Positions 11,348-64,000 of a DNA stretch of 64,000 nt are shown in pieces. The translations under genes and the position numbers were made by a program. Source of the DNA: Bugula neritina (taxonomy: Eukaryota > Animalia > Bryozoa); contig OZ037772.1 of NCBI GenBank assembly GCA_964035545.1, forward strand, positions 2,108,001 to 2,172,000, given 5' to 3'. The notes under the pieces were generated by a model that worked only from the letters and a program-made list of their open reading frames with translations, did not search any database and was not told where the DNA came from. How positions within the stretch are numbered: the stretch's first letter is position 1; the number at the start of each line of letters is the position of its first letter.

Positions 11348-12092
11348 GTGGATCCAGATGGTGGCTCCACAGCTAATGCTATCCAGGCTTACTGTCGCAA
11401 GGAAATGAAGAGCACTTGTATCAATGCCAAGACCTCCGAGTTTGGCACCAAGTCGTACGTCACCCAGCAGCTAGATAATCAGCCATTCGTCGCTAAACAC
11501 ATGGGAACAGCACTCGTGAGTGTTTATCTTGTATCAACCATGACTTTCTTAGTAATAGTCAAGAATATCCAAGAGTTTTATGTTGATCATTGTCGCTATA
11601 GTAACATATTTGTATACTGTATGAATGTTCATAAGTGTTGCTATAGTAACATGTTGGTTTCCTGTATGGATGTTGATAAGTGTTGCTATAGTAACATGCA
11701 GATTACTATATCTATTTCATAAATCACCCAAAAAATAACAGGCATCTTCTTAAGCTGAGTGATTTCTTTGCAGGATTTTTGCAAGGTATCTAAATCTGAC
11801 CTATATACTGTAAATCTGACCTATATACTGTAAATATGACCTATATAGTGTAAACCTGACCTATAAAGCGTAAATTCGACCTACATATGAACATGATTGC
11901 GATAGTTGCATCTTTTTTTGTATTAATATACAATATTTTGTAGAATTCCAAATACCATCCAAAGCTCTGACAGTGATTGAGATTTACACCAAGACCCCCA
12001 CCCACTTGCCTATTATTGACATTGCTCCTGGTGACATCTGGACCACCCACAAAGTGTTTGGGGTTCAGCTTGGAGAAGTCTGCTTTTCATAG
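11348..12092 (+). pseudogene. Fibrillar collagen COLFI fragment, copy 2 (exon 11348-11515 and last exon 11944-12092; middle exons largely deleted)
   Basis: 11175-12790 duplicates 1-2030; only a remnant of the third exon remains near 11770-11785. Confidence 0.88.
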
Positions 12093-12806
12093 ACTCATAT
12101 CTAACAACAGTTTTATTTGTCCGATTTGTAAGACTGTCCCTGATTAGATAATTAATGGCCAATCAGAGAATGCAATCAATGTTTGGTTGGCTGAGCCCAA
12201 CAGTCTGATTTTTATATAACCTAATTTTTAAATGAAATATTTGATTACTCTAAATAAATTTATCCGAGACTTCTGAGGCAGTGATGGTGATTTTTGTACA
12301 TATAAATTTGAAGAAGTTTAGCTATAGGGTATATGCTGTTCTTTTAATTATTCCACCATAACCTGAGATTGTGAGCAGTAATTGTAGAATGAGTTAGGGA
12401 GGGTGTTATGCCCCTTCCTATGACTTTATATATTTAGAAACTGTTGTTGATTTAGTAATTCTGTTGGTGCTACATTTTTAAATTAATTTAATCCCATCAT
12501 TTCTCTGATATTGCAAAATATATTTTACCATATGGCCCTACACAACTTATTTCTCAGCTTGTAAATTTCATCATCAAAATTATTACAGTACTAAAGTTGG
12601 TCACAGATTTCTGATAAGCTGCAGTTTTCAGATTTGATTATTTAACCTATTCATCCTGAAATGAGACACTGTTAGTTTAAAATGGAATTGAACATATATT
12701 TTAGTTACTTAGTTCCAACTGTGTGGACCATATCAACATGTTAAATTTTACTTTGGCTACTATGAAGTATATAAGCAAATGGCATTAAGTTATTAATATA
12801 TAATAA

Positions 12807-13135
12807 GGTTTACAAAGACTTAATATACCAAGCAACTGTGACAAGACATGACAATAACTCCAGCCAATCATACACAGGACTCTGTTCAACTACCTTCAAA
12901 GCCAGACTCAACAACCATAAAGCCTCTTTCCTACATGCAGATAAACAACACACAACTCAGCAGACACATCCGGAATTTAGAACAAAAACAACACGCAATT
13001 CAGCCTAAAATGGATCATTTTAAAAATTTGTAAATCATACTCAAAACCTAATCAACAGATGTAACTTATTTAGCTATGAGAAATATGTAATTTTTAAACA
13101 ACCGGAGTTATCCACTCTCAACAAACGCAAAGAGC
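12807..13135 (+). mobile_element. Penelope-like element remnant, GIY-YIG endonuclease region
   Basis: With frameshifts: LIYQATV...SY(T/I)GL.STTFKARLNNHKASF...TQLSRHI..L...KWIIL...RCNL..YEK..I.....STLNKR.E. Confidence 0.75.
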
Positions 13136-13337
13136 GAAGTGTGAGAATTCCGTGCTAGTGACCTGCCACACACAGTGCGTGTGTTGCGAGTGCAAAATAT
13201 TATTAGCAAATGATGTTAGCGCTAAACTTTACTGCTCGCCTACAGACGTTTGTTTTTAAACAGCGTCACCGGGCAAAGTAATTTGGATATTATAAAAGCG
13301 GAAATGCAAAATATATAAAACTGTTTTAATTCAGCTC

Positions 13338-14714
13338 AGTATATTATGTCATACAGTATATTATGTTATACAGTATATTATGTTATACAGTATATTATGT
13401 TATACAGTATACTATGTTATACAGTATATTATGTTATACAGTATATTATGTTATACAGTATACTATGTTTTACAGTATATTATGTTATATACAGAATATT
13501 ATGTTATACAGTATATTATGTTATACAGTATACTATGTTATACAGTATACTATGTTATACAGTATACTATGTTATACAGTATACTATGTTTTACAGTATA
13601 TTATGTTATACAGTATACTATGTTATACAGTATACTATGTTATACAGTATACTACGTTATACAGTATATTATGTTATACAGTATATTATGTTATACAGAA
13701 TATTATGTTATACAGTATATTATGCTATAGAGTATATTATGTTATACAGTATATTTTATGTTATACAGTATATTATGTTATACAGTATATTATGTTATAC
13801 AGAATATTATGTTATACAGTATATTATGTTATACAGTATATTATGTTATACAGTGTACTATGTTATACAGTATACTACGTTATACAGTATACTATGTTTT
13901 ACAGTATATTATGTTATACAGTATACTATGTTATACAGTATACTATGTTATACCGTATAATATGTTATACAGTATACTATCTTATACAGTATATTATGTT
14001 ATACAGTATATTATGTTATACAGTATACTATGTTTTACAGTATATTATGTTATACAGTATACTATGTTATACAGTATACTATGTTATACAGTATACTATG
14101 TTATACAGTATAATATGTTATACAGTATATTATGTTATACAGTATATTATGTTATACAGTATATACTATGTTATACAGTATAATATGTTATACAGTATAT
14201 TATGTTATACAGTATATTATGCTATACAGTATATTATGTTATACAGTATATTATGCTATACAGTATAGTATGTTATACAGTACACTATGTTATACAGTAT
14301 ATTATGTTATACAGTGTACTATGTTATACAGTACATTATGTTATACAGTATACTATGTTATACAGTATATTATGTTATACAGTATACTATGTTATGCAGT
14401 ATACTATGTTATACAGTATTTTATGTTATACAGTATATTATGTTATACAGTATACTATGTTATACAGTATACTATGTCATACAGTATATTATGCTATACG
14501 GTATATTATGTTATACAGTATATTTTATGTTATACAGTATATTATGTTATACAGTATATTATTATGTTATACAGTATATTATGTTATACAGTGTACTATG
14601 TTATACAGTATATTATGTTGTACAGTATATTATGTTGTACAGTGTACTATGTTATACAGTATATTATGTTGTACAGTATATTATGTTGTACAATATAATT
14701 ATATTATGTTATAT
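13338..14714. repeat. 17-bp minisatellite (cagtatattatgttata), about 80 copies
   Basis: Direct tandem periodicity; source of the MLYSILCYTV ORFs. Confidence 0.97.
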
Positions 14715-14899
14715 TAATCAACATACAAATGAGATGCTTTTGTCAGTCTATAATGATGAATATTATACACTGGAACTGGGTTACTCTCTCACCTCCCCTC
14801 ACCTCAGCTCAGCTAGACCAGATCTTCCCAAGTGATGAATTTGGGCTTTCTTAGGGAAGATTTTTATTTCTAAAAATTCACAGTTTGTTACCAGCTCTT

Positions 14900-15916
14900 T
14901 GAGCTCTTGCCTTGTTTTCAAGATTACATGTACTGCATATGTATAACTATAACTCCTTCATTTTATGTAGTTCATATATTTATCCTCACTACACTCTACA
15001 ATCTAAGTTTACTTCTACATCCATGTGTCTATTATTCACTCTACTTTAGCTGCATGCTACCACTCCTACTACGAATGAAGGTTCGGAAGTTTGAATTGGA
15101 AGCAAAACCAACAGGAAGTTTAAGCAGCAATGCAAGCTCATTTCTATAAACTATACACACTGCATACATATAGTGGATATATTTCCTGTGTTCCAGTGCA
15201 ATCATCACATCATCACTCTTCATTATAGCTGCATCAATCCTTTCAAAGCTGAACTCAAGTTGTGACCTTGACATAATTCTATGATACAACTATCCTCACA
15301 CTCAATAAGTTATTAGAAAAAGAACCTGTTCCAGAGATATCTTTCAAAAAGCAATTCTGCGAATATATTTGAACTTTTAACATTATTTGACAGTATTTCC
15401 CTGAGCTACCTTCATAAGAGAGTTACATGAGAGTGTTATTGAGCTGGTTTGCAGTGAAGGATGATTTTTTGAGTTCTGTGTTTTCACAAGCAAACTCTAC
15501 CCACACATTGCTGACAATACTTTAACAGTTTTAGTGCCATTCAGCACCACGTTTTTATATAAGGTAGGATTCCTTCAATATGCCAATGGTTAGGAATCAG
15601 CAAATAAACTGCCTTGACCTGCAAAGTGACCTACAATGTACAGCTTGTCAAAACCCAAGTCAAACTTAAGCAAGCTGCAGCACAAATTTACCAGCTGCAG
15701 CCATCATATCAATAATTGAACTGCTCTGTGCTTTATACATGCATAATATAATAATCATAATCTTATATTATAATCGAATATACTAGAACAAATATAGACT
15801 TCTATAGTATATTATGCCTATCATTCATAAATTGCACTTTTAGAAAGAGGGGAACTTAATAGTAAACAGTTATGGAAGGGGAGATGATATGGTATGAAAA
15901 AGGTTTGGGACCACTG
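14900..15916 (+). mobile_element. Decayed hAT (Charlie-like) element with transposase dimerisation-domain remnant
   Basis: About 15470-15710 reads LYPHIADNTLTVLVPFSTTFLYKVGF...LDLQSDL...QLQPS, like YP.L...AL..L.PF.TTYLCE.GFS...Q.SH; ends in TIR-like aggtttgggaccactg. Confidence 0.65.
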
Positions 15917-16299
15917 AGCTAGAGGAACCACCATACCTCTACCATAGCATCACATTGCTCTGCCATCTTGATTGCAGCCTGCCAATTAAGAAAATTCAGG
16001 ATTAATCAGATGTTCATTGATGTCGCTGAATATGCTAGTACTAAACAGCTCAACTTAAACATATAACAAAAATATTTTACATAATGAAAGTACAAACAAA
16101 AAGATGCAAGTGCTAGCTGACACTGAAGGAGACTAATAAGAAACAAAGTCCTTGTAAAGATTTTGCTACTAAAAGGACATAGATTTTATCGGTATTTTTG
16201 TAATTTGAAAATATACAGGGCCGGAATTAGATATTCTAAAATAGCTCAATTGAAAAACATGCACACCTGGTGCCCTGGATAATTTTTCAGATTTCAACC

Positions 16300-16580
16300 T
16301 TAGAGTTGTCTCTCTTCGACGCTAAAATATAGCGCTCCGCTCAATGAATGCAACATTTCTTTCACGTGATTATTATAGAGCTGACCTTTGTAGTTGAGTG
16401 ACGTGTTATAATCCTTCTGCGCGTAGAACTTCCTCGTTACTTTAGTTTTATTCATATTGTGCCTTTTCTCAGTTACTACTTACTAGTTACTAAGTTTCTT
16501 ACCAGTTTACAGACTGACACTATTGGCTCTCCTGGGGTGAGAACAGTTTGAGTCATCTCATCATTTCTCAAATTAATCAG
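16300..16580 (+). promoter_or_regulatory. Putative promoter and non-coding first exon of TRIM copy 1
   Basis: Local CpG cluster with tcacgtga and gtgacgtg motifs, a CAG/GTAACC donor at 16581, and the ATG exon beginning at an acceptor (19148). Conserved at about 52740-53004. Confidence 0.5.
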
Positions 16581-17889
16581 GTAACCGTACTTTAATACTT
16601 GCAGTTAGATTTACTATTTTAGTATTCACTATTAGTATTAGTATTAGTATTTAATATTTTACTATTAGTATTTTAATTCTAGATTTACTTTTACTTTTAG
16701 TTTTCCTTTTAGCCTTTAGGCTTTAGGTTTAAGTCTAGGCTTATAACTTATATAATATCAATATAAGATTAAGCTTAAGACTAAGTTATATTTAAATTAT
16801 AAGTTATATAAATTAAAATTCTTACAGTTACTGTTATGAGTTAATGTTATAATGTTAATTAAATATAATTGTTTCTCTTTGAGTCTTTGATTTGAAATTT
16901 ACAATAGACATAGTAATACCATAGCCCATAGGCATGTGATCAATAATTAATTAATTATAATGATTTATCGAAAAATATAAATATGAATATCGTATTAATG
17001 ATATTAAATTTACTATTATTATAAAAAATTTAATCGACTTCAAGTTTAGGTTCAAGTTTTAATACTGAAAAATTGATCTACTAGTAGTAGTACTAGTACT
17101 ACTACGTCTACAGTAGTAGTAGTGGTAGTAGCCTACGATTACAGATTACTATTACGTACTATAAGTATTAGTCTATTAGTAATACATGTACTATTTGATT
17201 ACTCTTAGTATTGCTATTCGATTTACTGTTGGTATAACTATATAAGAATTGAGACTAGGTATTTCAGTTTCGCACTATTTTATTTATATAAATATTTGTA
17301 TTAACTTTAAGTATTACTATTAGTAATCACAATTAGTATTGATATTGCATCTCCTATTAGGATTACTGGTATTACTATTACTATTAGTATTGTTGTATGA
17401 GTAATTACTAATTAGTATTAGTAATTTTTACTCATTGCATTACATTTACTATAAGTATAAATATAAAGTGTAAGTTACTATTATTGCTCTACTATAACTA
17501 TCAGTATTAGATTTAGTGTTGCAGTTGGTTTTACTGCCAGGTCCCCTACCATCATTAAATTTATTTATAATGATAATCTTGGTGATTATCACCCAATATT
17601 GACTCATATGACTAGGTTAGCCACATTTATATGATCTGCTATTGTTGTAAACATAAAAATATGAGGTTAGTGTTAACAAATCATTTGCTAGGTAAGAGTG
17701 TAGAATAAATAATTGGCTAGAGATGAGTGTAGAAGCTGCCAACTCATGAAACAACTACACCTGACCTAACAGAAGCACAAACATGTTAAATTAGTATGTT
17801 CCACACCATCGTAGTTTCTATTAGATGATGAAAATATATAACTAGCAGTTGATGGCTTTTTCCCTGGCTGGTGGAAGAGTGACTCTAAG

Positions 17890-18492
17890 TAACATATTAA
17901 TATCTTGGTGTGTTAGTGGATCAGAATTTGAGATTTCATGAACATGTACAATCAGTAGTTGCAACAGTATCAAGAAGAATGTATATTGTGAAGGGTTTTG
18001 CATATCTTAGCTCTAAACCTCTAGAAAATATGTTATTCAAAAGTTTCATCTTGTCCCGCATCGCCTATTGTCTACCTACTATTTTTACTTGTATCTATGC
18101 CAGTGATAAAAAAGCCATTCGAAGGATTTTCAAAGTTTGCTCAAAACTTGGGATTGAGTATCTAAACATTGATTTGCACATTCAGAAACTCACTAAAGAA
18201 CTTGCTATCAAATATATAGCAGACAATGACCATTTTATCAATAACTTTCTGAGTCAATGCCCTTCTGGAGGATATCGAACTATCAAATATAGAGGGGCAT
18301 GGGGCAGAGATAGCTTCTTGCGACTTCTTGTAAATACTTTAAACGAGCTTTTATTTTAAATAGTCTAACAGAGTTTTGACTTTTTCTCCTAATTTTGTTA
18401 ATGCCTAGTTATGTTATAATCAGCATTTACACTGAATTTTGCAACGTGTTGTCATGTTTGTGATATGTAATAAATCAATCAATCAATCAAAT
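17890..18492 (+). mobile_element. 5'-truncated non-LTR retrotransposon (CR1/L2-like), RT C-terminus and 3' tail
   Basis: YLGVLVDQNLRFHEHV..V.....RRMY......LFKSFILSRI.YC; ends in aataaa followed by (tcaa)n. Confidence 0.8.
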
Positions 18493-19170
18493 CATGCATC
18501 ACCAACACTGCAGAAATGTTAAAATGAATTTTGTCATTTAGATTATGGAGAAAACAAAGTATTTTCAACACCCAGCACAAAGTATTTCATGAAACTATTT
18601 TTTCAACCACTGCTATGTTTCCCCCTATTTTGTGTTTTAGAGTGAGCCCACGCAATGTATCTAGCCCAAAAATGGGAAGGTAACATTGTAAAACTGGCTG
18701 ATATTTTTGAATGAGGGGATAAGCAGCTGAGCCCAATTGTGCTGTTTGTTCATAAAAGTAATACATAACTCACTGGTATTCATGTTTCACTTCTCCTCTA
18801 TATATTAGAAACACTTGATTAGTGATGTTCAATAGAAGTAGAATAAAAGTGTTCACTGAAGCACACAACATTGCTTCATATTTATTGTATATGGAGTTTG
18901 AGTCACCAGCAAAAACCTATTCAGTGATTACAATGGAAACAATACAGCCTTTGTTAGAGAGTTGAAGCTGTGAGCTCAGCATGTTGTAGCTGACTATCAC
19001 GTATACCAGTCTTATTAACTGCCTTTGTTTAACATTATTTTTCACTTTATTTTGTATGGTTTATTGTTAATGGTTAAGTCTTTGATTTGGAAACCTTCAC
19101 ATATGTAGTGTGAAATATTATGCTAAGAGTATGTGTATCTTTTACAGGATTTCCTTATTATATAACCAAT

Positions 19171-22100
19171 ATGGCAGAATCCAGAGTTGTGAAAAAGAGA
19201 TTAAACAATTCGTATCGCTGTGGGTACTGCTCGCAGTACTTCAACAAACTTGAAGATCCCAGAACTCTGCCCTGTCTGCATGTGTACTGCATGAGATGTT
19301 TGAAGACTGACATCGGTGGTAGGAAGGATCATATTAGATGTGCTTATTGTAGGTGAGTTACAGTACATAACACAATATATCATGTCATAGGCTTGCATAT
19401 GATTTTCTCACCATTATCTAGGAGTTGTCTGATCTGTGTCTATGAAAAGCAAACAATACTGTATATTCTATGTAAACTCTGGTTACTAACTTGTGGAGTG
19501 TGTGGATATCTTTTCATTAGGTAGAGAAAGTAACTGTTATGTAGATTGCACCATCAGCTGTCCTCTCTTGTTGAATTGTGGTGCTGTTAGATGTCATGGG
19601 ATTGGGGTTGTCTCCTCATTATATTATTTTGTTCTCATACAGTACAAGACTTGTTAGACCAACCTTTTTCATATCATCCCCACTTTAATAAATGTTTACT
19701 ATTAATTATCCCCCCTTTAAAAAACGAAAAAATTTATGACTGACATAATGATAATATAGATTACTATGCAATATTTTTCCTATTACATTTGAATACAATA
19801 TAGTTATTTCTGATAATTATATTATGCATGTATAAAACACAGAGCAGTTCAATTAATGATATTATGGCTGCAGCTGATGACATTGTACCAGCTTGCTTTC
19901 AAACCTCCCACCCCAACCCCTAAACCCCAACCCCAATATTGAAATTAAAACACATTCATGTAGAAGTAGACTGAGATGACAGAACTGGTTAAATAGATAA
20001 GCTAAGATGAATGCTTATAGATATACATGTACATGTAACTTGCAAGAGCTCAAAAGTCTTTAACAAACTGCTTGAAATTTTCAAAATCGAAATCCAGGCT
20101 CCCCCTAAAAAGCCCAAATTCCCTCTTATAGGGGATTCTCCCAGGTTGGGAACCACTGTGTTGAATTGACTTGTGTTTACTATCTTCTTTCCTGTGATTA
20201 TAAACATGTATGATGTTGTCATGACAACAGAGTTGCTGTGGCACAAAGTACAGTTTACTAGTAAGTAGTGATTGTGTAGTGAGAGTGGAGTGTCTGGTTA
20301 TTGTCCATGGTTATGTGTAATCTGTAAGGAATAGAATTATATTATTTTAATATAATGTTTAGAAAGGTACTTTTATAATGGCAGTTTGCTCAATAGCTTT
20401 AGTTCTAATGCGATAGACTCATAGCTCTGGAGTCTAGCAGCTGTTACCATTACCACTAGCTGTTCAAAATTCTGCCAACATCCGGGCTGCCAAAGCATAA
20501 TAGCCATTGACATTAAGGCCAAGCAGTCACTGGGAAACTATTTGACTAAAGAGCAGGTCTTATGACAATTAGTAGTCAGTCCCTTAGACAGGAATCAGTG
20601 ATTCTGTGACCTATATAGTTAAATCCAATGCTGAAATTTTAATAGATTATTAGACGGCCATCACAATTGTATTTGGTAGTGAGTTGTACAATATAATGTT
20701 ATGGGGTGCCAATCAGTGTCTAATATAGTCTGTGAATTGAGTGTCTCCTTTAGCTTTGATGAGTTGATTACTTCTTCTACCATCAGTCAGTTGTATTAAG
20801 TGTTACTTTGTATTGAGTGAATAGTGTTGAAGATTTGGGCCTATATTATGCCAACCCCCTCCCTCTGACTTAGACTGTGACCCAACCTGCTGCACATACA
20901 TAGTAGTACTACACTGAAGATAGTCAACATGTGTATATATCATATACATATATATATAACATATATATATACATGCATATATCATCCTACTAGTAATGGA
21001 TTACTAAGTACAAGTTATCCTATGACTCACTCTTCTTATGCTAGCTGCACGAGATAGAAAACACTCACACGTGACACGCACTCACAGTGCACTAGCTCTT
21101 GACACATTGCCAAGGATGATGAAATGACAGTTTCGCGCCACTCCTAGCAGTTAGAGTGGCAGGGAATAGTTGTAGTATGTTGTAGTATTGGCTCCTCAGA
21201 ATTCACCCCTCAGTAATTAGTTGCATTGCACAAACTTGCAACAAAAGTGAATAATTATTGACAATATGGCCTCCACTCAGTAGTTAACTAGTAATTTATC
21301 TATCATTTTACTCTACAAGTTACAGTTGAGTCTGTTTGTTGAGTAGCAGTTCTTTGTCATGAGTGACTATTTTCCAGCATATTAAGTACATAATATAGTC
21401 AAGTGTGTTTGTGTGGTAGCCTGTGGTCTATATAATGAATGTGTGTTGATGAGTGATGAGTATTTATTTGAGTATTTGTCAAGGACATAGCTGTGTGTGT
21501 GGATGGAGTATTTCATTACTTGAGATATACTAAACACAGCTAACACAGGTAACATACTGGTTGCTATATATTGTAGGAAAGATCACTATGACATAACAGA
21601 TCCCACAACACTACCAGTAGCTCAGCATGGAGACCCCTTAGAATACAAGTCTCCACCCAAACCTGCACCCATTCCCTGCGATGTGTGTAAAGGTGGAACA
21701 GAAGCTGCTGTGTTCTGTCTTGAGAGTCAAAAGAAATTGTGTCAGCAGCATCAAGAAGTGAGTCTTTCTTATATAATTTCTCAAGATAGGTTACTAAACC
21801 AGTTCTGGTTTGTGTGCAGAATATTATTGAAAAGAAATGTTGAGTCTGTGTGACTTTTTATACTAAACACACAGTTTCACAGTGCAGTGAGTCAACTATG
21901 ACAGACTTGTTGGTGAAAATACAACCAACTAAACTGTTGACCTTTATTATACAGAATCACAGAGAGCTGATGGGAGATAGACATCAGTTTATTGACATTG
22001 AGGTCTACAGAGCTTCTCCCCAAAGATATACTATAACTGAATGTGAACATCATAAAGAGGAACAGCTGACAGAAGTGTGTTCCAAGTGTCACCAGATATT

Positions 22101-25100
22101 CTGTATGAGATGTGATATGAGGACTGGCTGTAAGGATAAGACAGGTATTTACTTGCTGTTTCTATTTCTGTAGAAAGAAACTGAGAAATATTACAAGAAC
22201 CTGTTATTTATTATTTTATTATCAAAGTGAGTTATGTAACAGTAAAAGAGGAAGTCAGTTTGTCAGCATTAAGGTTTGTGTGAGACAGAAGTGGATAGTG
22301 CAGGAGTTTGTATTCTCACTGTTATGTTGAATATTTAGTATATTTCATCCTTCAAGTGTCTGTTTCCTTGATAAGATGGTATAGGCATAGCTTTAACTCA
22401 GTTGTGTCCCACCTTTTTTATAAATGTTTTCTATTAAGTTTCCGCCTCTTTGATAAAATTGTAATTTCATTTATAAAGAAAATCTTGGACAGGTTGTTTT
22501 CCTAATAATTCATTGAGTGTAGAAAAAAGCACTTTGTATTTGACATGGACCAGTGTCTGCCGCAACTTCAGTTCAGCTTTGAAAGCATTGATGCTGCTAT
22601 TAAAAGCAGTTAGTTGATGATTATAATCATTCATTTTAGGTTCAAAGTTTTTAGTACAACAATTATATCTACTAGGTATGCAATAAGTAGTTTATGGAGA
22701 TCAGATTGACTCACTGCAAAAACTTGCTGTTGGTTTTTACTTTCAAGAAACTTTTTAACCTCCATTCGTAGTAGGAGGGGTAGCAGCTAGGGTAGAAAAG
22801 GAAAAGGCACTTTGTGTTTGGCATGGACCAGTGTCTACCACAACTTGAGTTTAGTTATAGTTATACATATACATGTAACCTGAAAAACAAGGCAAGAGCT
22901 CAAAGAGCTGGTAAACTGTGTGAATTTTTAGAAATGAAACCCCTGAAAAGCCCAAATTCCCTGCAAGGGGAATCCCCCAAGGTTGGGAGCCACTGCTCTA
23001 ACGTTTTCAATTATATTATTCCAAGTGCAGTGATTAATGAGCTAACCTGTGAAATATTTCTAGTCCAACCAACTGTCTAGTTATTACATAGTATGTGTAT
23101 AGTGATACATCATCTACCTGTAGGTACAGGTAGTAGGTGTAGAATAAGTACAATGTCATATCTAAAAATGCTTTTATGAATAGTGTGATTTTATGTATAC
23201 AGAGGAGACAGTAGCATCCCATGACTTGGCATCTTTGAGTGATTTGTCTTGTGAGTTACGAGAAAGTCTGACTGGTGGAATAGAGACTCTGTCTGAGAAA
23301 GTTGCAGAGTTGAATGACATCTCAAAGGATGCCTGGAAAGAACTGAGTAAAATAGAAGATGAAGTGAAGAAGATGGTTGCCAGAGTGAACGCTGTGGCTG
23401 ATGCTCAGGTATGCTGACATGGTGATGTCATTGGATGTATTTCTGGTTGACTGAAATTAGGTTTTGCATTTGGTCTTTGAGTTGTAAATAGAAATAAATT
23501 TCATTTGCCACTAAAATTAACTGGCCATTAAAGCTTTATCATTCTGTGAACAAGTAGCAGTAGTCATACATCACATGTTACTCAGTGCAGAGGAACCTGT
23601 CAATACAGATGACTCACTCATCCTTCTGCAACTGTCAATCACTCACACAGAGAGGTTGGCTGTCTGAGTGATTGACAGGTGTCAGGAGGAGGAGACTAGT
23701 CACGTGATGTACTAGCTCTCTGCTGTGTATAGAGTGTCACGTGACTGAGTCATTGTCCACTCAGTGGGTGATCTGTCACCTTCATTTCAAGTGTAGAGGT
23801 TGTGAGGTGCAGATGTGGTTATACTGTGTTACTATTTATTAGATAGAAGAGATTAGAAAGAAAGCTACAAACCTGAGGCTAGAAATATATGGATATTTGA
23901 AGAGCTGCACACAGATAGTGGATAATTATAGAATAGAGCTGGCCTTGAGTAAGACAATGGGCAGACAGTCTCTGCTGGACACAGTACAGCATGCAGTTGA
24001 TAAGTTCAATGATGCAGGGATTGTGAGAGACTACAAAGAGATGAGTGAGAAGATGGAAAAGGCTACAGATATTGGTGTAATAGAGAAGTGTGTACTTCCA
24101 GACAGCATCTTGGTACCAACATGTAGGTGGAGTCTATAAATAGTAACACTTACTATAAATAACTTTCTGCTTGTAATCATGTGAGTTGCCTTCATTGAAT
24201 ATTTAAATAGTAGAATAAGTAGATAGAGTTTATTTATTAGAGAATTGAGTTTTGTTCTACTCTCACATTATGAGACATTTCTGCAGTGTTTCAGAGTTTA
24301 TGATGTATAAGTGAGCTGCTAAACTGTGTTATGCTGACTACCTGCTGTCAGTATTAACAAGATATTCTCACTTAGACCTGTGCATCACGTAGCAACTTGT
24401 AGTAACTGCAGACCGCTTGTATTTAAAACATCTTTTAGTTTTAAGTTTGAAAAGCTGTTCCCACCTCCTCAGGTGATGAGATTCTCAAGTTATAGTATTG
24501 TTATTTTGTTGTTGCAGACAGTGAAGACAGTCTGGGACTGAAGTTGCTGCAGCCACCATCTTCTCTCCAGTCTGATGGACTTCCTGTACGTGACTGGTGT
24601 GACTCAGTAAACATCTCAGCTGATGGACATCTCATGTGTCGGACACCAGAAGGTGTAGAAGTAATAAATGGAGACACTCTGGATACTATCAGCTCAGTGA
24701 AACACACCAACACTACAGTGTGGTGGGAGATAATCCAACCTGAAGGGGTGATGGTTGGCAGCTGGTATAACAGAGAGGAGAAAACAGCTGAATTCTCACT
24801 TCTTGATCCGAACTCCTTTGAGAAGACTCGCTCTCTCTTCAAGCATTCAGTAGATAAACCCACTTACTATAGAATAACTCAACACCTCTCACTGCTCTGT
24901 ATTGTAGACAGGAGAGAGAAACAGCTGGTAGTCTGTAACCTAGTTGACAATAAAATACAGAAGTTCCCACTTCCTGAGATGAAGTACCCTGTACCTGTAT
25001 GCATCCTCCCAGACTCAACTCTCCTCATAGGAGACTACACTGCAGATGGTAAAGTGAGAAGATATAAAGTGGAGAACACAACTCTCACTCTAATGTGGGA

Positions 25101-26346
25101 GTTTCCACACATCTCAGGACCAACTGGTATTTCCTTTGATCCAACATCTGAACTGATTCACATCTGTACATGGGAAGGACCTCTCCTCATCCTCTCACTT
25201 GAAGGTAAATACTCTGTTTATTATAGTAAGTTTAGTTATTTTATATATAATTATGTTGTAGTAAATAATATATTTTAATAATTAACAGTAAACAACTTCC
25301 ACTCATAAGATATATTATGATATTGTTAGTATTTATCAACTCACTGATGTTATTTTTAGCTAAAAGTTATGTAATAAAGACTGTAGCATGCTGATAGTAG
25401 ATGTTATATTCTTCATCACATGACTTGTAGCTAATAATAATATTAGTGAATAATACTGCCTCCCTGCAATAAGTTTATTTCCAGCTGCAGTAACATGCAG
25501 GATGTAAGCACAGGTAAAAGTGTATGTTATACTGTATAGGTTTAAGATGTACTCTGTGTAGTGTGCAGTGAGCTCTTAGTAAACTCTCTATTCAGTCTTC
25601 CTTTCCAAGGGTTCACCTGGTAGTGTAGAGGATAGGGACTCCACACTGCTGAGTGAGTTGGTGCTGCAAAGGGTTCAAACCCTCCTATCAGCATGTCTAG
25701 TTAGTATACTATGCAAGTGTTTTACAGTAGTTTTAGAGGTGCTCAGTCTAACAACTGTACAGACTGCCAGCTACACATGAGTTATGAGTTGTAGTTTGAC
25801 TTCAGTCTAGTGCTGCTGTTGTTTTGGTCATCAGATAATTTAAATATAATTTGCTACTTTCTGACTGCCATTACTGAGACTATTGTAATTTGATGATGGC
25901 TGGTAGAGCAGTGTTTGCTGGTGAAACTCAGGTGGCTGTGGTTGGTTCTTGTCATGTATTTAATATGTGATAATGTTGGAGTAGATGCAGTAGTATAGTA
26001 TTAGAAGTAGACATGTGGGTGTGTCCTTGCTGAGAGCCACAGGCTAAGTTTGTGGGTCAAGGTCAATACAGTTGTATAATGAGACACTGTTTTCTGCTAG
26101 AATATTTACTTAATGCATATAACCTGCTTAGTTCCATCTTTAAAGGCAGTCTGTGTGTTTCTCTCAATACACACCAACTGATACAATATGATGCTATTAT
26201 TTACAGGTCAACTGGTGCTTACTGTTCCCAGAGAAAGTCTTGGTGTGAGTAGCTGGGTGAGGGTGAGGGACATTGCTGTGTATAACAGAGACACAGTATT
26301 TCTAGCATGTAGAGATGGTCTGAGGAGATACACAATAAAATACTAA
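19171..26346 (+). CDS. TRIM-type E3 ubiquitin ligase, RING-Bbox1-Bbox2-coiled coil-NHL-like beta-propeller, copy 1, 621 aa. Exons 19171-19352, 21577-21757, 21955-22144, 23203-23408, 23843-24122, 24518-25204, 26207-26346
   Basis: C3HC4 RING (CGYC...LPCLHVYCMRC...CAYC), B-box1 (CDVC...FCLES..LCQQH..NH), B-box2 (CEHH...CSKC...CMRC), coiled coil, propeller blades (P.PVCILPDSTLLIGD; P.GISFDP...IHIC). All introns GT-AG and phase-compatible, no stops; AATAAA at 26524. Confidence 0.92.
19658..20158. mobile_element. hAT-like non-autonomous element in a TRIM intron
   Basis: Ends aggttgggaaccactg; the paralogue at 55354-55865 shows both TIRs. Confidence 0.55.
22399..22995 (-). mobile_element. hAT-like remnant related to the 14900-15916 element, in inverted orientation
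   Basis: cagttgtgtcccacc...ggttgggagccactg ends; internal cattcgtagtaggag is the reverse complement of about 15063-15077. Confidence 0.55.
25609..25700 (+). mobile_element. tRNA-derived SINE-like head (paralogue about 61518-61610)
   Basis: A-box-like tagtgtagagg and B-box ggttcaaaccc at tRNA-like spacing; no convincing cloverleaf. Confidence 0.45.
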
Positions 26347-27060
26347 ACTTATCAGCTACAGTTTACTAATAATCAGCTCAGTGAGGTACTGAGAGATAAA
26401 ATGGATAATATTTGTCATCAACATAATTATCTTCATTACAATTCATCAATACACACACTCTGTAATTATAGTTGGATATGAGATGTTTTACTGTATCAAA
26501 TATGTGTTGTTATTTTACCATCTAATAAAGTTTATTTGTTAGCGAAAATATAGTCTGTTTTCATGCCTCATTAGCTTTAGTTCAAGTTGAGTTCGGTTAG
26601 TAAAAATAATTTTTACTGGAGCAGTAACTGTAAATGACTTGTCTGTGGGAGAATTTATTCACTGAATTGACATGCAAGTGCAAGTAACTCCAACATGACT
26701 AAGCAATTTTATTCCAACCATTCATAATAATAATATACATTCCACTGCTCTGTATACAACAGCATTGAGTAGCCAATCAAATTGTTTCTTGTCATGCAAT
26801 CAGGAATCTGATAAATAATATATAAGGCAATCAACTAGATATAAACACTGTTTTACTCAACACATGAGCTGTCTGTGATACAGCTGCTTTGTAAAATGTT
26901 TGTTAATTTGATTAGTTCAGTTACAGTTTAATTATGACGTATTCCCCATTCACCTGGTAGAAATACCATACAATATGTGCACAGACAAGTTGCAATGACT
27001 CTAACAGAAACTTTCTCAGTAGGTTTCAGTTCATCTTGAATATAGTACAGCTTGTTGTCA

Positions 27061-27465
27061 TTTGGCCTCAATAGTATTGATGATACACTACCTTGTTTGG
27101 CCTCAATAGTATTGATTGTATACTACCTTGTTTGGCCTCAATAGTATTGATGGTAGACTACCTTGTTTGGCCTCATTAGTATTGATGGTAGACTACCTTG
27201 TTTGGCCTCAATAGTCTTGATGGTAGACTACCTTGTTTGGCCTCAATACTATTGATGGTATACTACCTTGTTTGGCCTCAATAGTATTGATGGTAGACTA
27301 CCTTGTTTGGCCTCATTAGTATTGATGGTAGACTACCTTGTTTGGCCTCAATAGTCTTGATGGTAGACTACCTTGTTTGGCCTCAATACTATTGATGGTA
27401 TACTACCTTGTTTGGCCTCGATAGTCTTGATGATACATTACCTTGTTTGGCCTCAATAGTCTTGC
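27061..27465. repeat. 35-bp minisatellite, about 11 copies
   Basis: Unit tttggcctcaatagtattgatggtagactaccttg, head-to-tail with no spacers. Confidence 0.95.
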
Positions 27466-47760: not shown

Positions 47761-48786
47761 CTACCTACATATGAACATGATTGCGATAATTGCATCTTTT
47801 TGTATTGATATACAATATAGCTTGCCTTTGAGGCTTTTTAACAACTACTAATGAGTTCAACCCAAAAGCACTTTGATTTCTGTGCAAGTTTAGAGTTTTG
47901 AGTGTGCCCCCTGCCATTTTGTAGTATTCCAAATCATCAGAAGCTCAGACGGTGATTGAGATTGACACCAAGACCGTCACCCACTTGCCTATTATTGACA
48001 TAGCTCCTGGTGACATCGGGACCACCCACAAAGAGTTTGGGGTTCAGCTTGGAGAAGTCTGCTTTTCATAGACTCATATCTAACAACAGTGTTATTTGGC
48101 TGATTTTTTAAAACTGTCCCTGATTTGAGAATTAGTGGCCAATCAGAGAATGCAATCAATGTTGGTTGGCTGAGACCAGCAGTCTGATTCTTATATAACC
48201 TAATTTTTAACTGAAATATTTGATTACTCTAAATAAATTTATCCGAGACTTCCAAGGCAGTGATGGTGATTTTTGTACATATAAATTTGGAGGAGTTTAG
48301 CTATAGGGTTTATGCTGTTTTTTAATTATTCCACCATAACCTGAGATTGTGAGTAGTAATTCTAGAATGAGGTAGGGGGGGGGTGTAACGCCCCTCCCTA
48401 TGACTTTATATATTTAGAAACTGTTGTTAATTTAGTAATTCTGTTGGTGCTGCATTTTTAAATTCATTTAATCCAATCATTTCTCTGATATTGCAAAATA
48501 TATTTTACCATAAGGTGCTACGCAAGTTACTTCTCAGCTTGTAAATTTCATCATCAAAATTATTATAGTACTAAAGTTGGTCACAGATTTCTGATAAGCT
48601 GCAGTTTTCAGATCTGATTATTTATCCTATTTATCCTGAAATTAGACATTGTTAGTTTAAAATGGAATTTAACATATGTTTTAGTCACTTAGTTCCAACT
48701 GTGTTGACCATATCAATATTTTAAATTTTACTTTGGCTGCTATGAAGTATATAAGCAAATGGCATTAAGTTATTAATATATAATGA

Positions 48787-49118
48787 GGTTTGCAAAGACT
48801 TAATATACCAAGCAACTGTGACAAGACATGCCAATAACTCCAGCCAATCATACATAAGACTTTGTTCAACTACCTTCAAAGCCAGACTCAACAACCATAA
48901 AGCCTCTTTCCTACATGCAGATAAAGCCAACAACACACAACTCAGCAGACACATCCGGGATTTAAAACAAAAACAACACGAAATTCAGCCTAAAATGGAT
49001 CATTTTAAAAATTTGTAAATCATACTCAAACCTAATCAACAGATGTAACTTATGTAGCTATGAGAAATATGTAATTTTGAAACAACTGGAGTTATCCACT
49101 CTCAACAAACGCAAAGAG
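48787..49118 (+). mobile_element. Penelope-like GIY-YIG remnant, duplicate
   Basis: YQATVTRH...SYIRLCSTTFKARLNNHKASFLHADKANNTQLSRHIRDLK...RCNLCSYEKYVI...LNKR.E. Confidence 0.75.
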
Positions 49119-49287
49119 CGAAGTGTGAGAATTCCACGCTAGTGACCTGCCACACACAGTGCGTGTGTTGCGAGTGCAAAATATTATTAGCAAATGATGC
49201 TAGCGTTAAACTTTACTGCTCGCCTACAAACGTTTGGATATTATAAAAGCGGAAATGCAAAATATATAAAACTGTTTTAATTCAGCT

Positions 49288-51278
49288 CAGTATATTTTGT
49301 TATACAGTATACTACGTTATACAGTATACTATGTTATACAGTATACTATGTTATACAGTATATTATGTTATACAGTATATTATGTTATACAGTATACTAT
49401 GCTATACAGTATATTATGTTATACAGTATACTATGTTATACAGTATATTATGTTATACTGTATATTATGCTATACAGTATATTATGTTATACAGTATAAT
49501 ATGTTATACAGTATATTATGTTATACAGTATATTATGCTATACAATATATTATGTTATACAGTATGTTATGTTATACAGTATGTTATGTTATACAGTATA
49601 TTATATTATACAGTATACTATGTTATACAGTATAATAAGTTTTACAGTATACTATGTTATACAGTATACTATGTTATACAGTATACTATGTTATACAGTA
49701 AATTATGTTATACAGTATATTATGTTATACAGTATACTATGTTATACAGTATATTATGTTATACAGTATATTATGTTATACAGTATATTATGTTATACAG
49801 TATACTACATTATACAGTATATTATGTTATACAGTATATTATGTTATACAGTACATTATGTTATACAGTATACTATGTTATACAGTATACTATGTTATAC
49901 AGTATATTATGTTATACAGTATATTATGTTATACAGTATACTACATTATACAGTATATTATGTTATACAGTATATTATGTTATACAGTACATTATGTTAT
50001 ACAGTATATTATGTTATACAGTATATTATGTTATACAGTATAATATGTTATACAGTATACTATGTTATACAGCATATTATGTTATACTGTATATTATGCT
50101 ATACAGTATATTATGTTATACAGTATAATATGTTATACAGTATATTATGTTATACAGTATACTATGTTATACAGTATACTATGTTATACAGTATATTATG
50201 TTATACAGTATATTATGCTATACAGTATATTATGTTATACAGTATATTATGTTATACAGTATACTATGTTATACAGTATATTATGTTATACAGTATATTA
50301 TGTTATACAGTATATTATGTTATACAGTATACTATGTTATACAGTATACTATGTTATACAGTATATTATGTTATACAGTATACTATGTTATACAGTATAC
50401 TATGTTATACAGTATATTATGTTATACAGTATATTATGTTATACAGTATATTATGTTATACAGTATACTATGTTATACAGTATACTATGTTATACAGTAT
50501 ATTATGTTATACAGTATATTATGTTATACAGTATATTATGTTATACAGTACATTATGTTATACAGTATATTATGTTATACAGTATATTATGTCATACAGT
50601 ATACTATGTTATACAGTATACTATGTTATACAGTATATTAAGTTATACAGTATAATATGTTATACAGTATACTATGCTATACAGTACATTATGTTATACA
50701 GTATATTATGTTATACAGTATATTATGTCATACAGTATACTATGTTATACAGTATACTATGTTATACAGTATATCAAGTTATACAGTAAGTTATGTTATA
50801 CAGTATATTATGTTATACAGTATACTATGTTATACAGTATACTATGTTATACAGTAAGTTATGTTATACAGTATATTATGTTATACAGTATATTATGTTA
50901 TACAGTATGTTATGTTATACAGTATATTATGTTATACAGTAAATTATGTTATACAGTATATTATGTTATACAGTATGCTATGTTATACAGTATATTATGT
51001 TATACAGTATACTATGTTATACAGTAAGTTATGTTATACAGTATCTTATGTTATACAGTATATTATGTTATACAGTATTCTATGTTATACAGTATATTGT
51101 GTTATACAGTATACTATGTTATACAGTAAGTTATGTTATACAGTATCTTATGTTATACAGTATATTATGTTATACAGTATATTATGTTATGCAGTATACT
51201 ATGTTATACAGTATACTATGTTATACAGTATACTATGTTATACAGTATACTATGTTATACAGTATATTATGTTATATT
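49288..51278. repeat. 17-bp minisatellite (cagtatattatgttata), about 117 copies
   Basis: Paralogue of 13338-14714 with the same flanks. Confidence 0.97.
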
Positions 51279-51469
51279 ATTCAACATACAAATGAGATGC
51301 TCTTGTCAGTCTATAATGATGAATATTATACACTGGAACTGGGTTACTCTCTCACCTCCCCTCACCTTAGCTCAGCTAGACCAGATCTTCCCAATAGTGA
51401 TGAATTTGGGCTTTTTTAGGGAAGATTTCTATTTCTAAAAATTTCACAGTTTGTTACCAGCTCTTTGAG

Positions 51470-52336
51470 CTCTTGCCTTGTTTTCAAGATTAAATGTACT
51501 GCATATGTATAACTATAACTCCTTCATTTTATGTAGTTCATATATTTATCCACACTACACTCTACAATCTAAGTTTACTTGTACATCCATGTGTCTATTA
51601 TTCACTCTACTTTAGCTGCTATACCTGTCCTACTACGAATGAAGGTTCGGAAGTTTGAATTGGAAGCAAAACCAACAGGAAGTTTAAGCAGCAATGCAAG
51701 CTCATTTCTATAAACTATACACACTGCATACATATAGTGGATATATTTCCTGTGTTCCAGTGCAATCATCACATCATCACTCTTCATTATGGCTGCATCA
51801 ATCTTTTCAAAGCTGAACTCAAGTTGTGACCTTGACACAATTCTGTGATACAACTATCCTCACACTCAATAAATTATTAGAAAAAGAACCTGTTTCAGAG
51901 ATATCTTTCAAAAAGCATTTCTGACATTGCTGACAATACTTTAACAGTTTTAGTGCCATTCAGCACCACGTTTTTATATAAGATAGGATTCCTTCAATTA
52001 ATATGCTAATGGTTAGGAATCAGCAAATAAACTGCCTTGACCTGCAAAGTGACCTACAATGTGCAGCTTGTCAAAAACCAAGTCAAACTTAAGCAAGCTG
52101 CAGCACAAATTCACCAGCTGCAGCCATCATATTAATAATTGAACTGCTCTGTGCTTTACATGCATAATATAATAATCATAATCTTATATTATAATCAATA
52201 TACTAGAACAAATATAGACTTCTATTGTATATTATGCCTATCATTCATAAATTGCACTTTTAGAAAGAGGGGAACTTAATAGTAAACAGTTATGGAAGGG
52301 GAGATGATTTGGTATGAAGAAGGTTTGGAACCACTG
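51470..52336 (+). mobile_element. Decayed hAT (Charlie-like) element, duplicate with an internal deletion
   Basis: Aligns to 14900-15916; lacks about 15360-15505. Confidence 0.6.
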
Positions 52337-54864
52337 CATGAGCTAGAGGAACCACCATACCTCTACCATAGCATCACATCCCTCTGCCATCTTGATTGCA
52401 GCCTGCCAGTTAAGAATTGATTGACGATTGACGAGAGATTCAGTGATGTCGCTGAATATGATAGTACTAAACAGCTCAACTTAAACATAATAAAAATATT
52501 TTACATAATGAAAGTACAAACAAAAAGATGCAAGTGCTAGCTGACACTGAAGACTACTAATAAGAGACAAAGTTCTTGTAAAGATTTTGCTACTAAAAAG
52601 GACATAGATGCTATCGGTATTTTTGTAATTTGAAAATATACAGGACCGGAATTAGATGTTCTAAAATAGCTCAATTGAAAAATATGCACACCTGGTGCCC
52701 TGGATAATTTTTCAGATTTCAACCTAAGAGTTGTCTCTCTTCGACGCTAAAATATAGCGCTCCGCTCACTGAATGCAACATTTCTTTCACGCGATTATTA
52801 TAGAGCCGACCTTTGTAGTTGAGTGACGTGTAATAATCCTTCTGCGCGTAGAACTTCCTCGTTACTTTAGTTTTATTCATATTCATATTGTGCCTTTTCT
52901 CAGTTACTAGCTACCAAGTTTCTTACCAGTTTACAGACTGACACTATTGGCTCTCCTGATGTGAGAACAGTTTGAGTCATCTCATCATTTCTCAAATTAA
53001 TCAGGTACCCGTACTTTAATACTCGCAGTTAGATTTACTATTTTAGTATTCACTATTAGTATTAGTATTTAGTATTTTACTATTAGTATTTTAATTCTAG
53101 ATTTACTTTTAGTTTTAGTTTTACTTTTAGCCTTTAGGCTTTAGGTTTAAGTCTAGGCTTATAACTTATATAATATCAATATAAGATTAAGCTTAAGACT
53201 AAGTTATATTTAAATTATAAGTTATATAAATTAAAATTCTTACAGTTATGAGTTAATGTTATAATGTTAATTAAATATAATTGTTTCTCTTTGAGTCTTT
53301 GATTTGAAATTTACAATAGACATAGTAATACCATAGCCCATAGGCATATGATCAATAATTAATTAATTATAATGATTTATCGAAAAATATAAATATGAAT
53401 ATCGTATTAATGATATTAAATTTATTATTATTATAAGAAATTTAATCGACTTCAAGTTTAGGTTCCAGTTTTAATACTGAAAAATTGATCTACTAGTAGT
53501 AGTACTAGTACTACTACTAGTACTACTACGTCTACAGTAGTAGTAGTGGTAGTAGCCTACGATTACAGATTACTATTACGTACTATAAGTATTAGTCTAT
53601 TAGTAATACATGTACTATTTGATTACTCTTAGTATTGCTATTCGATTTACTGTTGGTATAACTATATAAGAATTGAGACTAGGTATTTCAGTTTCGCGCT
53701 ATTATTTATATAAATATTTGTATTAACTTTAAGTATTACTATTAGTAATCACAATTAGTATTGATATTGCATCTCTTATTAGGATTACTGGTATTACTAT
53801 TAGTATTAGTATTGTTGTATGAGTAATTACTAATTAGTAATTTTTACTCATTGCATTACATTTACTATAAGTATAAATATAAAGTGTAAGTTACTATTAT
53901 TGCTCTACTATAACTATCAGTATTAGATTTAGTGTTGCAGTTGGTTTTACTGCCAGGTCCCCTACCATCATTAAATTTATTTATAATGATAATCTTGGTG
54001 ATTATCACCCAATATTGACTCATATGACTAGGTTAGCCACATTTATATGATCTGCTATTGTTGTAAACAGAGTTTTGACTTTTTCTCTCAATTTTCAGTT
54101 ATGTTATTATCAGCATTTACACTGAATTTTGCAACGTGTTGTCATGTTTGTGATATGTAATAAATCAATAAATCAATCAATCAAATCATGCATCACCAAC
54201 ACTGCAGAAATGTTAAAATGAATTTTGTCATTTAGATTATGGAGAAAACAAAGTATTTTCAACACCCAGCACAAAATATTTCATGAAACTATGTTTTCTC
54301 CCACTGCTATGTTTCCCCCTATTTTGTGTCTTAGCGTGAGCCCACGCAATGTATCTATCCCAAAAATGGGCAGGTAACATTGTAAAACTGGCTGATATTT
54401 CTGAATGAGGGGATAAGCAGCTGAGCCCAATTGTGCTGTTTGTTCATAAAAGTAATACATAACTCACTGGTATTCATGTTTCACTTCTCCTCTATATATT
54501 AGAAACACTTGATTAGTGGTGTTCAATAGAAGTAGAATAAAAGTGTTCACTGAAGCACACAACATTGCTTCATATTTACTGTATATGGAGTTTGAGTCAC
54601 CAGCAAAAACCTATTCAGTGATTACAATGGAAACAATACAGCCTTTGTTAGACAGTTAAAGCTGTGAGCTCAGCATGTTGTAGCTGGCTATCATGTATAC
54701 CAGTGTTATTAACTGCCTTTGTTTAACATTATTTTTCACTTTATTTTGTATGGTTTGTTGTTAATGGTCAAGTCTTTGATTTGGAAACCTTCACAGATGT
54801 GGTGTGAAATATTATGCTAAGAGTATGTGCATCTTTTACAGGATTTCCTTATTATATAACCAAG

Positions 54865-62247: not shown

Positions 62248-62856
62248 ACTTATCAGCTACAGTCTACTAATAATCAGCTCAGTGAGGTGCTGAGAGATGA
62301 AATGGATAATATTTGTCATCAACATAATTATTTCATCACAATTCATCATTACACACACTCCGTAATTATAGTTGGATATGAGATGTTTTACTGTATCGAA
62401 TATGTGTTGCTATTTTACTATCTAATAAAGTTTATTTGTTAGTGAAAATATAGTCTGTTTTCATGCCTCATTAGCTTTAGTTCAAGTTGAGTTCGGTTAG
62501 TAACAATAATCTATACTGGAGCAGTAACTGTAAATGACTTGTTTGCGGGAGAATTTATACACTGAATTGACATGCAGGTGCAAGTAACTCCAACATGACT
62601 AAGTAAATTTTCTCCAACCATTCACAATGTTATACATTCCATTGCTGTGCAAACAATAGCATTGAGTAGCCAATCAAATTGTTTCTTGTCATGCAACCAG
62701 GAATCTAATAAATAATATATAAGGCAATCAACTAGATATAAACACTGTATTACTCTACACATGAGCTGTCTATGATACAGCTGCTTTGTGAAATGTGTGT
62801 AATTTGATGAGTTAAGTTCAATTGGTTGCAGTTTAATTATGACATGTTCACCATTA

Positions 62857-63170
62857 TGTAATATTAGAGGACAACTCCTATCCAGTGTGCAGTGGTAGTA
62901 TACTATTAGTCAAAGGGAGTGCTCCGTATAATATAAATAGCTGACTACTCCTACACCAACACTCCTGAACACCAGCTAGACGACAAGAACTCTTGAACAC
63001 CACTCAGGTTAAGGGACTCCACCCACCCAGGCACCCCTGAACACCATCCAAGGCAGACCTGTTCTGGATCACAGTCTTAACTCCTCACAGACTAAGACAG
63101 GAGCTGAAGTCATCCTCACAGCCAAGCAACCCATGCCAATATACCAACCCTAGCTAACCTGAATACTACA
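62857..63170 (+). mobile_element. Candidate solo LTR (314 bp)
   Basis: TGTAATATT...AATACTACA inverted termini, internal tataaatag, absent from the paralogous block; no clean TSD. Confidence 0.4.
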
Positions 63171-63819: not shown

Positions 63820-64000
63820 TTTGGCCTCAATAGTATTGATGATACACTACCTTGTTTGGCCTCAATAGTATTGATGGTAGACTACCTTGTTTGACCTCAA
63901 TAGTGTTGATGGTACACTACCTTGTTTGGCCTCAATAGTGTTGATGGTACACTACCTTGTTTGGCCTCAATAGTATTGATGGTAGACTACCTTGTTTGAC
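63820..64000. repeat. 35-bp minisatellite, runs off the window end
   Basis: Same unit as 27061-27465. Confidence 0.95.

Follow-up and report, generated by a model that had tools for sequence, protein, structure and literature searches.

Within a 64,000-nucleotide stretch of the genome of the bryozoan Bugula neritina (positions 2,108,001 to 2,172,000 of contig OZ037772.1), referred to here as the window, two paralogous genes were identified that encode, in this order, a RING finger, two probable B-boxes, a putative coiled-coil region and a beta-propeller. These genes, copy A and copy B, probably belong to a lineage-specific tandem array of about 100 TRIM-NHL E3 ligase genes, in which a constant enzyme half is joined to a propeller with a diversifying top face, and which would constitute a germline-encoded intracellular recognition repertoire. 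It was verified that the RING/B-box/coiled-coil half is under purifying selection, whereas diversifying selection acts very strongly on approximately 27 codons of the propeller. New here are the NHL propeller as the hypervariable part and an array of this size and uniformity.

Selective regimes of the two halves

The original prediction, made by eye from copies A and B, had reported changes at 8 positions in the first part of the protein (9 replacement versus 14 silent) and about 24 substitutions plus an indel in the main propeller exon (31 versus 7), and these counts were reproduced when substitutions were estimated by the NG86 method. Exons 1 to 5 (346 codons) differ between the two copies at 8 amino acids, with 9.0 replacement and 14.0 silent changes, whereas exon 6 (229 codons) shows 24 substitutions and one codon indel, with 30.3 replacement and 8.7 silent changes and six codons altered at more than one base. 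Exon 7, where SSWVRVR in copy A faces SDLVW in copy B, as had also been noticed, contains four amino-acid differences (5.0 replacement and 4.0 silent changes), and the propeller as a whole differs by 35 replacement and 13 silent changes. The N-terminal half and the propeller hardly differ in silent divergence (dS of 0.069 and 0.070, respectively), with introns differing by 3–5%, but the ratio of replacement to silent divergence (dN/dS) is 0.16 in the former and 0.84 in the latter, and the two halves differ significantly (Fisher p = 0.009).

The same contrast, which the original prediction had put forward as a domain-wise check, was observed across the family, for which 18 full-length genes and 27 propeller sequences were analysed. 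Among the full-length genes, 311 of the 347 N-terminal alignment columns are invariant and only three contain three or more states, whereas in the propeller the invariant columns are 173 out of 277, with at least three states in 37 columns and at least five in 17. When all 153 gene pairs were compared, the median dS was 0.054 in both halves, while dN rose from 0.011 in the N-terminal half to 0.073 in the propeller, whose dN/dS exceeded 1 in 127 pairs (median 1.30). Similarly, the dN/dS estimated by IQ-TREE under the GY+F3X4 model (omega) reached 1.73 in the propeller, calculated from the 27 sequences, versus 0.19 in the N-terminal half.

Site models were run with a codon-likelihood routine of our own, which matches the IQ-TREE likelihood to the third decimal. 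In the propeller, the comparison of M1a with M2a gave a doubled log-likelihood difference (2dlnL) of 720, with 12.2% of codons in a class at omega 12.9, and the corresponding values were 753 for M7 against M8, a comparison that had been suggested beforehand and that strongly favours a selected class, and 718 for M8a against M8. In the N-terminal half, used as a control, M1a against M2a yielded a 2dlnL of 0.07 and no selected class was recovered. Even in the single-ratio model M0, releasing omega from 1 improved the fit of the propeller (2dlnL 32.9, p = 1e-8). Altogether, 27 codons presented a posterior probability above 0.95 of belonging to the selected class. Since recombination can inflate site tests, the alignment was additionally cut into four 70-codon pieces, each with its own tree, and a 2dlnL of 76–206 was obtained in every piece.

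Position and nature of the selected sites

In propellers, the connecting loops alternate between the two faces. In Brat, the b-c and d-a loops compose the top surface, an RNA-binding platform with protruding basic and aromatic residues (PMC4015489). According to the structure model, the selected sites of the Bugula family are located on the d-a and b-c loops, that is, on the predicted top face of a six-bladed NHL-like propeller. These loops gather 15 selected sites in 47 residues, whereas none is found among the 42 residues of the a-b and c-d loops (Fisher p = 2e-5), and when strand ends are included, 21 of the 22 assignable selected sites fall on the top side. The proposal that the variable loops occupy the top face was therefore borne out by strand order, and the mapping that had been recommended as a check placed the variable sites on one face rather than scattered through the domain.

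The selected codons in exon 7 correspond to propeller residues 244, 245, 249 and 264, and the strand layout of this exon, which lies outside the structure model, was inferred from the NHL repeat pattern; assuming this layout, the four sites would fit the same top-face pattern. The hypervariable loop of exon 7 (26245–26275, and at the same place in loci L031 to L050) lies in a GGTGAG-like repetitive stretch and varies from copy to copy by in-frame indels and by substitutions, and slippage may add to its diversity.

Concerning their composition, the selected sites are enriched in Trp (16.7-fold), His (3.4-fold) and Arg (3.3-fold), as well as in Tyr. One of them displays 13 different residues among the 27 genes, the combination of residues is unique in each gene, and the net charge summed over the 27 sites ranges from -4 to +6 between copies.

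Exchange among copies

The divergence of the propeller exons (p = 0.066) exceeds that of the gene's own introns (0.036–0.048). The distances of neighbouring gene segments are uncorrelated between copies, and the four-gamete test fails for about one quarter of the informative site pairs separated by less than 30 bases. In one copy pair, the N-terminal exons and introns are only 0–1% diverged, yet 30 propeller codons differ, most of the variants being common to other copies. Together, these features reveal the array as a fine-scale mosaic, in which the copies share one pool of top-face variants that is reshuffled by exchange among them, new combinations being retained by selection. The silent variants per codon flanking the selected sites amount to 0.17, compared with 0.27, so that silent variation is not raised near them, which argues against a simple local mutation hotspot.

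Domain identity and relatives

The RING finger is a complete C3HC4 and matches Pfam zf-RING_UBOX (30.5 bits, cut-off 25.2) and zf-C3HC4 (22.5 bits, cut-off 21). Its closest solved relatives, found by phmmer against PDB sequences (E 3e-5 to 6e-3), are the RINGs of TRIM56, TRIM2, TRIM3 and TRIM32, all within the TRIM subfamily that includes the NHL proteins. B-box 2 was detected by Pfam zf-B_box with E 9e-5 and 23.0 bits, just below the 24.1 cut-off, and B-box 1 gave a weak ANCHR-like_BBOX match alone (E 0.07), although the Cys/His spacing is visible by inspection in both B-box exons. Exons 4 and 5, which span about 160 residues, presented weak matches to coiled-coil-type Pfam families (E 0.003–0.1).

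The propeller exons of neither copy match Pfam NHL (PF01436), even at E <= 1, so the NHL assignment rests on fold, profile searches and distant matches. When the propeller was compared by structure, its ten highest-ranking matches all proved to be NHL domains from RNA-binding TRIM-NHL proteins, two of them solved with RNA bound, and the domain presents the six-bladed NHL beta-propeller fold of that subfamily. Additionally, a profile built from the family only reaches the Pizza proteins (E 2e-5), reportedly designed from the NHL domain of PknD, and PknD itself (E 0.011), and the distant bacterial matches of the propeller carry Pfam NHL. No Pfam SPRY match was found in the genes, whose C-terminal domain is a beta-propeller and not a B30.2/PRY-SPRY domain. 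The genes are thus classified as divergent members of the TRIM-NHL family with NHL-like repeats; the identification of a TRIM-type ligase with an NHL propeller in the original prediction agrees with both the RING relatives and the structural matches.

An exhaustive HMMER search of 1.84 billion protein representatives returned 14 matches at E <= 1e-10, all of them fragments, and those looked up came from metagenome and sequencing-run assemblies. At least part of the closest matches, which share GC content and gene structure with the window's genes, probably derive from the same or a sibling species. Among the relatives, a 13.4-kb metagenome contig (L051) contains two more divergent family members arranged in tandem. 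Their exon structure is the same but much more compactly laid out: the complete gene extends over about 4.7 kb, and about 2.5 kb separate the two genes. Their RING is 82% identical to that of copy A, while the propeller is 52–54% identical, and the two genes share 45% identity with each other in the propeller; since this contig is probably from the same or a sibling species, it says nothing about the age of the family. The nearest look-alikes by protein language model are NHL-propeller clusters of the ESM Atlas (scores 0.93–0.94), mostly from Mollusca, part of whose members carry Pfam NHL. This comparison, made without alignment or E-value, is a lead only, and suggests that related divergent NHL propellers exist elsewhere in lophotrochozoans. 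No description of this family was found in the literature searched, bryozoan genome papers included.

Size and integrity of the array

A six-frame search of the whole assembly with the exon 6 product recovered 122 matches among 204 first-look candidates, and the family was estimated at no fewer than about 95–120 copies in the genome, mostly in tandem, which fits the expanding paralogue family that had been predicted. About 75 of the exon 6 matches lie within the first 4.4 Mb of the window's contig, labelled C8, mostly tens of kilobases apart, and smaller clusters occur on four other contigs, C1, C2, C3 and C4. Approximately 96% of the copies retain an open frame, and the listed exon 6 lengths all differ by multiples of three. 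Had substitutions accumulated at random to the observed divergence, only 16–38% of such exons would be expected to remain open. For exon 5, about 95 candidate copies were detected in the genome, and the 40 that were scored are 98–100% identical; exon 4 shows 96–99.5% nucleotide identity among paralogues. Sixteen of 20 full-length loci are intact seven-exon genes.

Two pairs of loci, L032 and L033 (C8:2.07 Mb and 0.69 Mb) and L037 and L048 (C8:1.78 Mb and 0.78 Mb), present near-identical exons and introns, and L037 differs from L048 by eight replacement changes in seven codons and by no silent change. Such near-identity between copies 1.0–1.4 Mb apart suggests either a very recent large-block duplication inside the array or a duplication in the assembly. 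In another locus, L035 (C8:1640790-1649890), the propeller exons are open and exon 5 is partial, exons 1–4 having not been found in the 6.5 kb upstream; this locus may be a truncated or disrupted member.

Proposed function and alternative explanations

In the proposed mechanism, each protein would be a cytosolic ligase dimerised through its coiled coil, the top face of the propeller would bind a ligand specific to that copy, and the constant RING would ubiquitinate the bound ligand or else signal. The array as a whole may then serve as a recognition repertoire against fast-changing targets inside the cell, among which the proteins or RNA of viruses or of other intracellular parasites are the most likely, following a logic comparable to that of TRIM5 and the finTRIMs of fish, except that an NHL propeller replaces the B30.2 domain. 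The sensor against pathogens, transposons or non-self that had been envisaged in the original prediction is a candidate role for these genes.

Several points weigh against this interpretation. In the A/B pair alone the propeller dN/dS is below 1, and an excess above 1 appears only when more paralogues are compared; hence, the positive selection that had been read from the two copies holds across the family but not for that pair by itself. Recombination among the copies is rampant, which inflates tests based on site models, and the codon model does not accommodate the multi-base changes that are frequent at the selected codons. The site models were run with branch lengths held fixed except for a scale factor, and their site posteriors are naive empirical Bayes. 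The 27 propellers represent about a quarter of the roughly 100 copies. The faces were assigned by strand order in a five-blade structure model and not from coordinates, and in exon 7 the indel-rich stretch, whose alignment is uncertain, contains three of the four selected sites. Finally, transcription was demonstrated at the level of the family and not for copy A or B individually, because the RNA contigs are short and the paralogues share sequence.

Among the alternatives, the one that deserves most attention, although it is unlikely, holds that the array consists of sequence-specific RNA binders, whose NHL top face would bind single-stranded RNA as in Brat, LIN-41 and Mei-P26 and whose many specificities would be directed at viral or transposon transcripts or at many endogenous mRNAs. 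The RNA-binding nature of all ten closest structural relatives speaks in its favour, as do the enrichment of the selected sites in Arg, Trp, His and Tyr and the basic and aromatic residues on the RNA-binding top surface of Brat. However, Trp, Arg and Tyr are also typical of protein–protein hot spots, and the charge variation between copies suggests that the top face is not uniformly electropositive as reported for canonical TRIM-NHL proteins; this variation argues against uniform RNA binding, even though the structural relatives bind RNA there. A more specific version, in which about 100 RNA-sequence-specific propellers mounted on one ligase module would provide innate, protein-based recognition of viral or transposon RNA, diversified by selection and fine-scale exchange, was considered rather doubtful. 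Recognition of self and non-self or of kin, acting in colony fusion, gamete compatibility or larval settlement near kin, would suit a colonial bryozoan, and the extreme diversity, the tandem arrays and the fine-scale shuffling of variants are compatible with it. Nevertheless, inspection of the copy A sequence revealed no signal peptide or membrane segment and the protein looks cytosolic, while known allorecognition systems rely on allelic polymorphism at few loci and not on about 100 paralogues fixed in one genome; such a role was judged improbable.

An arms race internal to the genome, whose targets would be selfish elements of the host or in which the array would itself be a selfish amplifying unit, was judged quite improbable. 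The genes are indeed embedded in satellite-rich DNA with transposon fragments, and their amplification looks very recent, with dS around 0.05 and some of the distant pairs almost identical, but nothing ties the copies to specific elements. That the RING/B-box/coiled-coil half is kept under purifying selection and that pseudogenes are nearly absent suggests that the host benefits from the genes. The least probable explanation, to which very little weight was given, denies adaptive diversification altogether and attributes the variable propeller to relaxed constraint, targeted hypermutation or micro-conversion, and the constant half to homogenisation by gene conversion. The A/B dN/dS close to 1, the pervasive recombination and the many multi-base changes, with variants mostly common to other copies as micro-conversion would give, are in agreement with it. 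On the other hand, the equal silent divergence of the two halves indicates that the N-terminal half was not simply homogenised, the whole-domain omega is significantly above 1, invariant columns predominate in the same propeller alignment in which others reach five or more states, and the variable sites lie on one face only. Open frames and exon lengths in multiples of three, as well as the unraised silent variation beside the selected sites, also oppose this explanation. Considering the evidence as a whole, a germline-encoded recognition repertoire was retained as the best explanation.

Gene models, transcription and surrounding sequence

Copy A (19171–26346) and copy B (54865–62247) are intact genes of seven exons, coding for 621 and 618 amino acids, respectively, with GT-AG borders at all introns. 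The copy A model was built from open frames and splice signals, and copy B, whose exons match those of copy A one by one, was mapped from it by alignment. Contigs of public sequencing runs cover the exons and almost no introns, indicating that these runs behave as RNA, and they confirm four of the six introns, each with GT..AG borders, through the joins listed in Table 1. The genes are therefore spliced and the family is transcribed. The runs containing the sequence include marine, biofilm and symbiont metagenomes. Selected codons 156 and 158 are spanned by a single contig, and at the second of them it does not agree with copy A. The start of exon 6 at 24518, already given in the original prediction, is correct according to the RNA join, whereas an alternative acceptor at 24522 was discarded, since copy B lacks that AG and the RNA contigs join 24122 to 24518. 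In low-depth contigs from three runs, position 22155 is joined to 22853 with 26 unrelated letters in between, which could reflect an alternative exon or else a paralogue whose intron 3 is different.

Table 1. Coordinates of the duplicated units and of the exons of copies A and B in the window
Feature	Position	Strand	Supporting evidence or remarks
Duplicated unit, first copy (about 15–16 kb; carries copy A)	11935..27239		Self-BLAST and tandem repeat table
Duplicated unit, second copy (carries copy B)	47916..63998		Self-BLAST
Copy A exon 1: start codon and C3HC4 RING	19171..19352	+	Pfam RING matches; donor AG/GTGAGT
Copy A exon 2: linker plus B-box 1, recognised by its Cys/His pattern	21577..21757	+	AG acceptor, GT donor; RNA join 21757>21955
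Copy A exon 3: B-box 2	21955..22144	+	Pfam zf-B_box; RNA join 22144>23203 in three runs
Copy A exon 4: first putative coiled-coil exon	23203..23408	+	Gene model; weak coiled-coil-type Pfam matches
Copy A exon 5: second putative coiled-coil exon and linker	23843..24122	+	RNA join 24122>24518, GT..AG, three runs
Copy A exon 6: NHL-like propeller from blade I to blade V; contains 23 of the 27 codons under positive selection	24518..25204	+	
Copy A exon 7: final strand of blade V, then blade VI and stop codon; indel-rich hypervariable loop	26207..26346	+	RNA join 25204>26207
Copy B exon 1: RING	54865..55046	+	Aligned to copy A with 3 mismatches in 182 bases; splice sites intact
Copy B exon 2: B-box 1	57290..57470	+	Mapped from copy A
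Copy B exon 3: B-box 2	57668..57857	+	Mapped from copy A
Copy B exon 4: putative coiled coil	58769..58974	+	Mapped from copy A
Copy B exon 5: putative coiled coil and linker	59409..59688	+	Mapped from copy A
Copy B exon 6: propeller blades I to V	60430..61113	+	Open frame; differs from copy A by 24 substitutions and a deletion of one codon
Copy B exon 7: blade VI and stop codon	62114..62247	+	Mapped from copy A

The window has a guanine plus cytosine content of 34.5% and belongs to an assembly of 216 Mb. Self-BLAST revealed in it a tandem segmental duplication whose two units share 92–95% nucleotide identity, each carrying one gene on the + strand, with a repeat period of about 36 kb; outside these units, the window is mostly satellite DNA. 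Upstream of each gene there is a 17-base satellite (13337–14707, with 80 copies, and 49288–51276, with 117 copies), and the space between the units is filled by arrays of 35-, 6/21-, 21-, 20-, 30-, 26- and 17-base repeats, at 27061–27464, 29610–30479, 31066–34594, 35662–35966, 36147–37227, 41284–42134 and 42717–43436. A segment of about 0.7 kb upstream of copy A (17654–18366) is absent at the aligned place in copy B, and a 149-codon open frame within it (17910–18359) resembles, by inspection, the C-terminal end of a retrotransposon reverse transcriptase. Intron 5 measures 741 bases in copy B (59689–60429) versus 395 in copy A, with an insertion of about 350 bases in the former.

Comparison with known systems

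The family shares its predicted domain order with the TRIM-NHL proteins (class VII, or Marin's subfamily C), which comprise Brat, Mei-P26, Thin, LIN-41/TRIM71, TRIM2, TRIM3, TRIM32 and NHL-2, and which bind RNA through the very face that varies in the Bugula family. However, canonical TRIM-NHL proteins are single-copy, slowly evolving developmental regulators, with three members in flies and four in worms (PMC4015489), whereas the Bugula family consists of about 100 near-identical tandem copies with omega around 13 at top-face sites. It also differs from them in having no filamin domain, in repeats too divergent for Pfam NHL and in a top-face charge that varies between copies. The NHL propeller is otherwise known from a handful of conserved developmental RNA regulators, and this family could reveal whether NHL domains lend themselves to re-tuning towards many targets, be they RNA or protein; it offers about 27 defined, putative specificity positions on a small and well-folded scaffold.

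Large lineage-specific families of ligase adaptors with a positively selected substrate-binding domain, for which pathogen proteins were proposed as targets, are also found among the F-box and MATH-BTB proteins of nematodes and plants. Nevertheless, these are adaptors of cullin ligases with other folds, while the Bugula proteins are predicted to be single-chain RING ligases.

In TRIM5, positive selection acts on surface loops of the C-terminal recognition domain. TRIM5alpha and the finTRIMs, the latter having undergone amplification and a change in selective regime (PMC3503706), resemble the Bugula family in their constant TRIM scaffold, their lineage-specific multiplication and the positive selection on C-terminal loops, and such loop-focused selection beside a conserved RING/B-box/coiled-coil half was found here as a clean signal, with equal silent divergence in both halves and omega around 13 at about 12% of the codons, on one face. 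Diversified TRIM families are a familiar theme of vertebrate intrinsic immunity, where they are based on the B30.2 domain, whereas here the hypervariable surface is that of an NHL propeller in a little-studied phylum. The Bugula family thus differs from TRIM5alpha and the finTRIMs in having an NHL propeller instead of B30.2/SPRY, in its lophotrochozoan invertebrate host and in its larger and more uniform array, and it could help to explain how diversity of recognition inside the cell arises in an invertebrate that lacks adaptive immunity.

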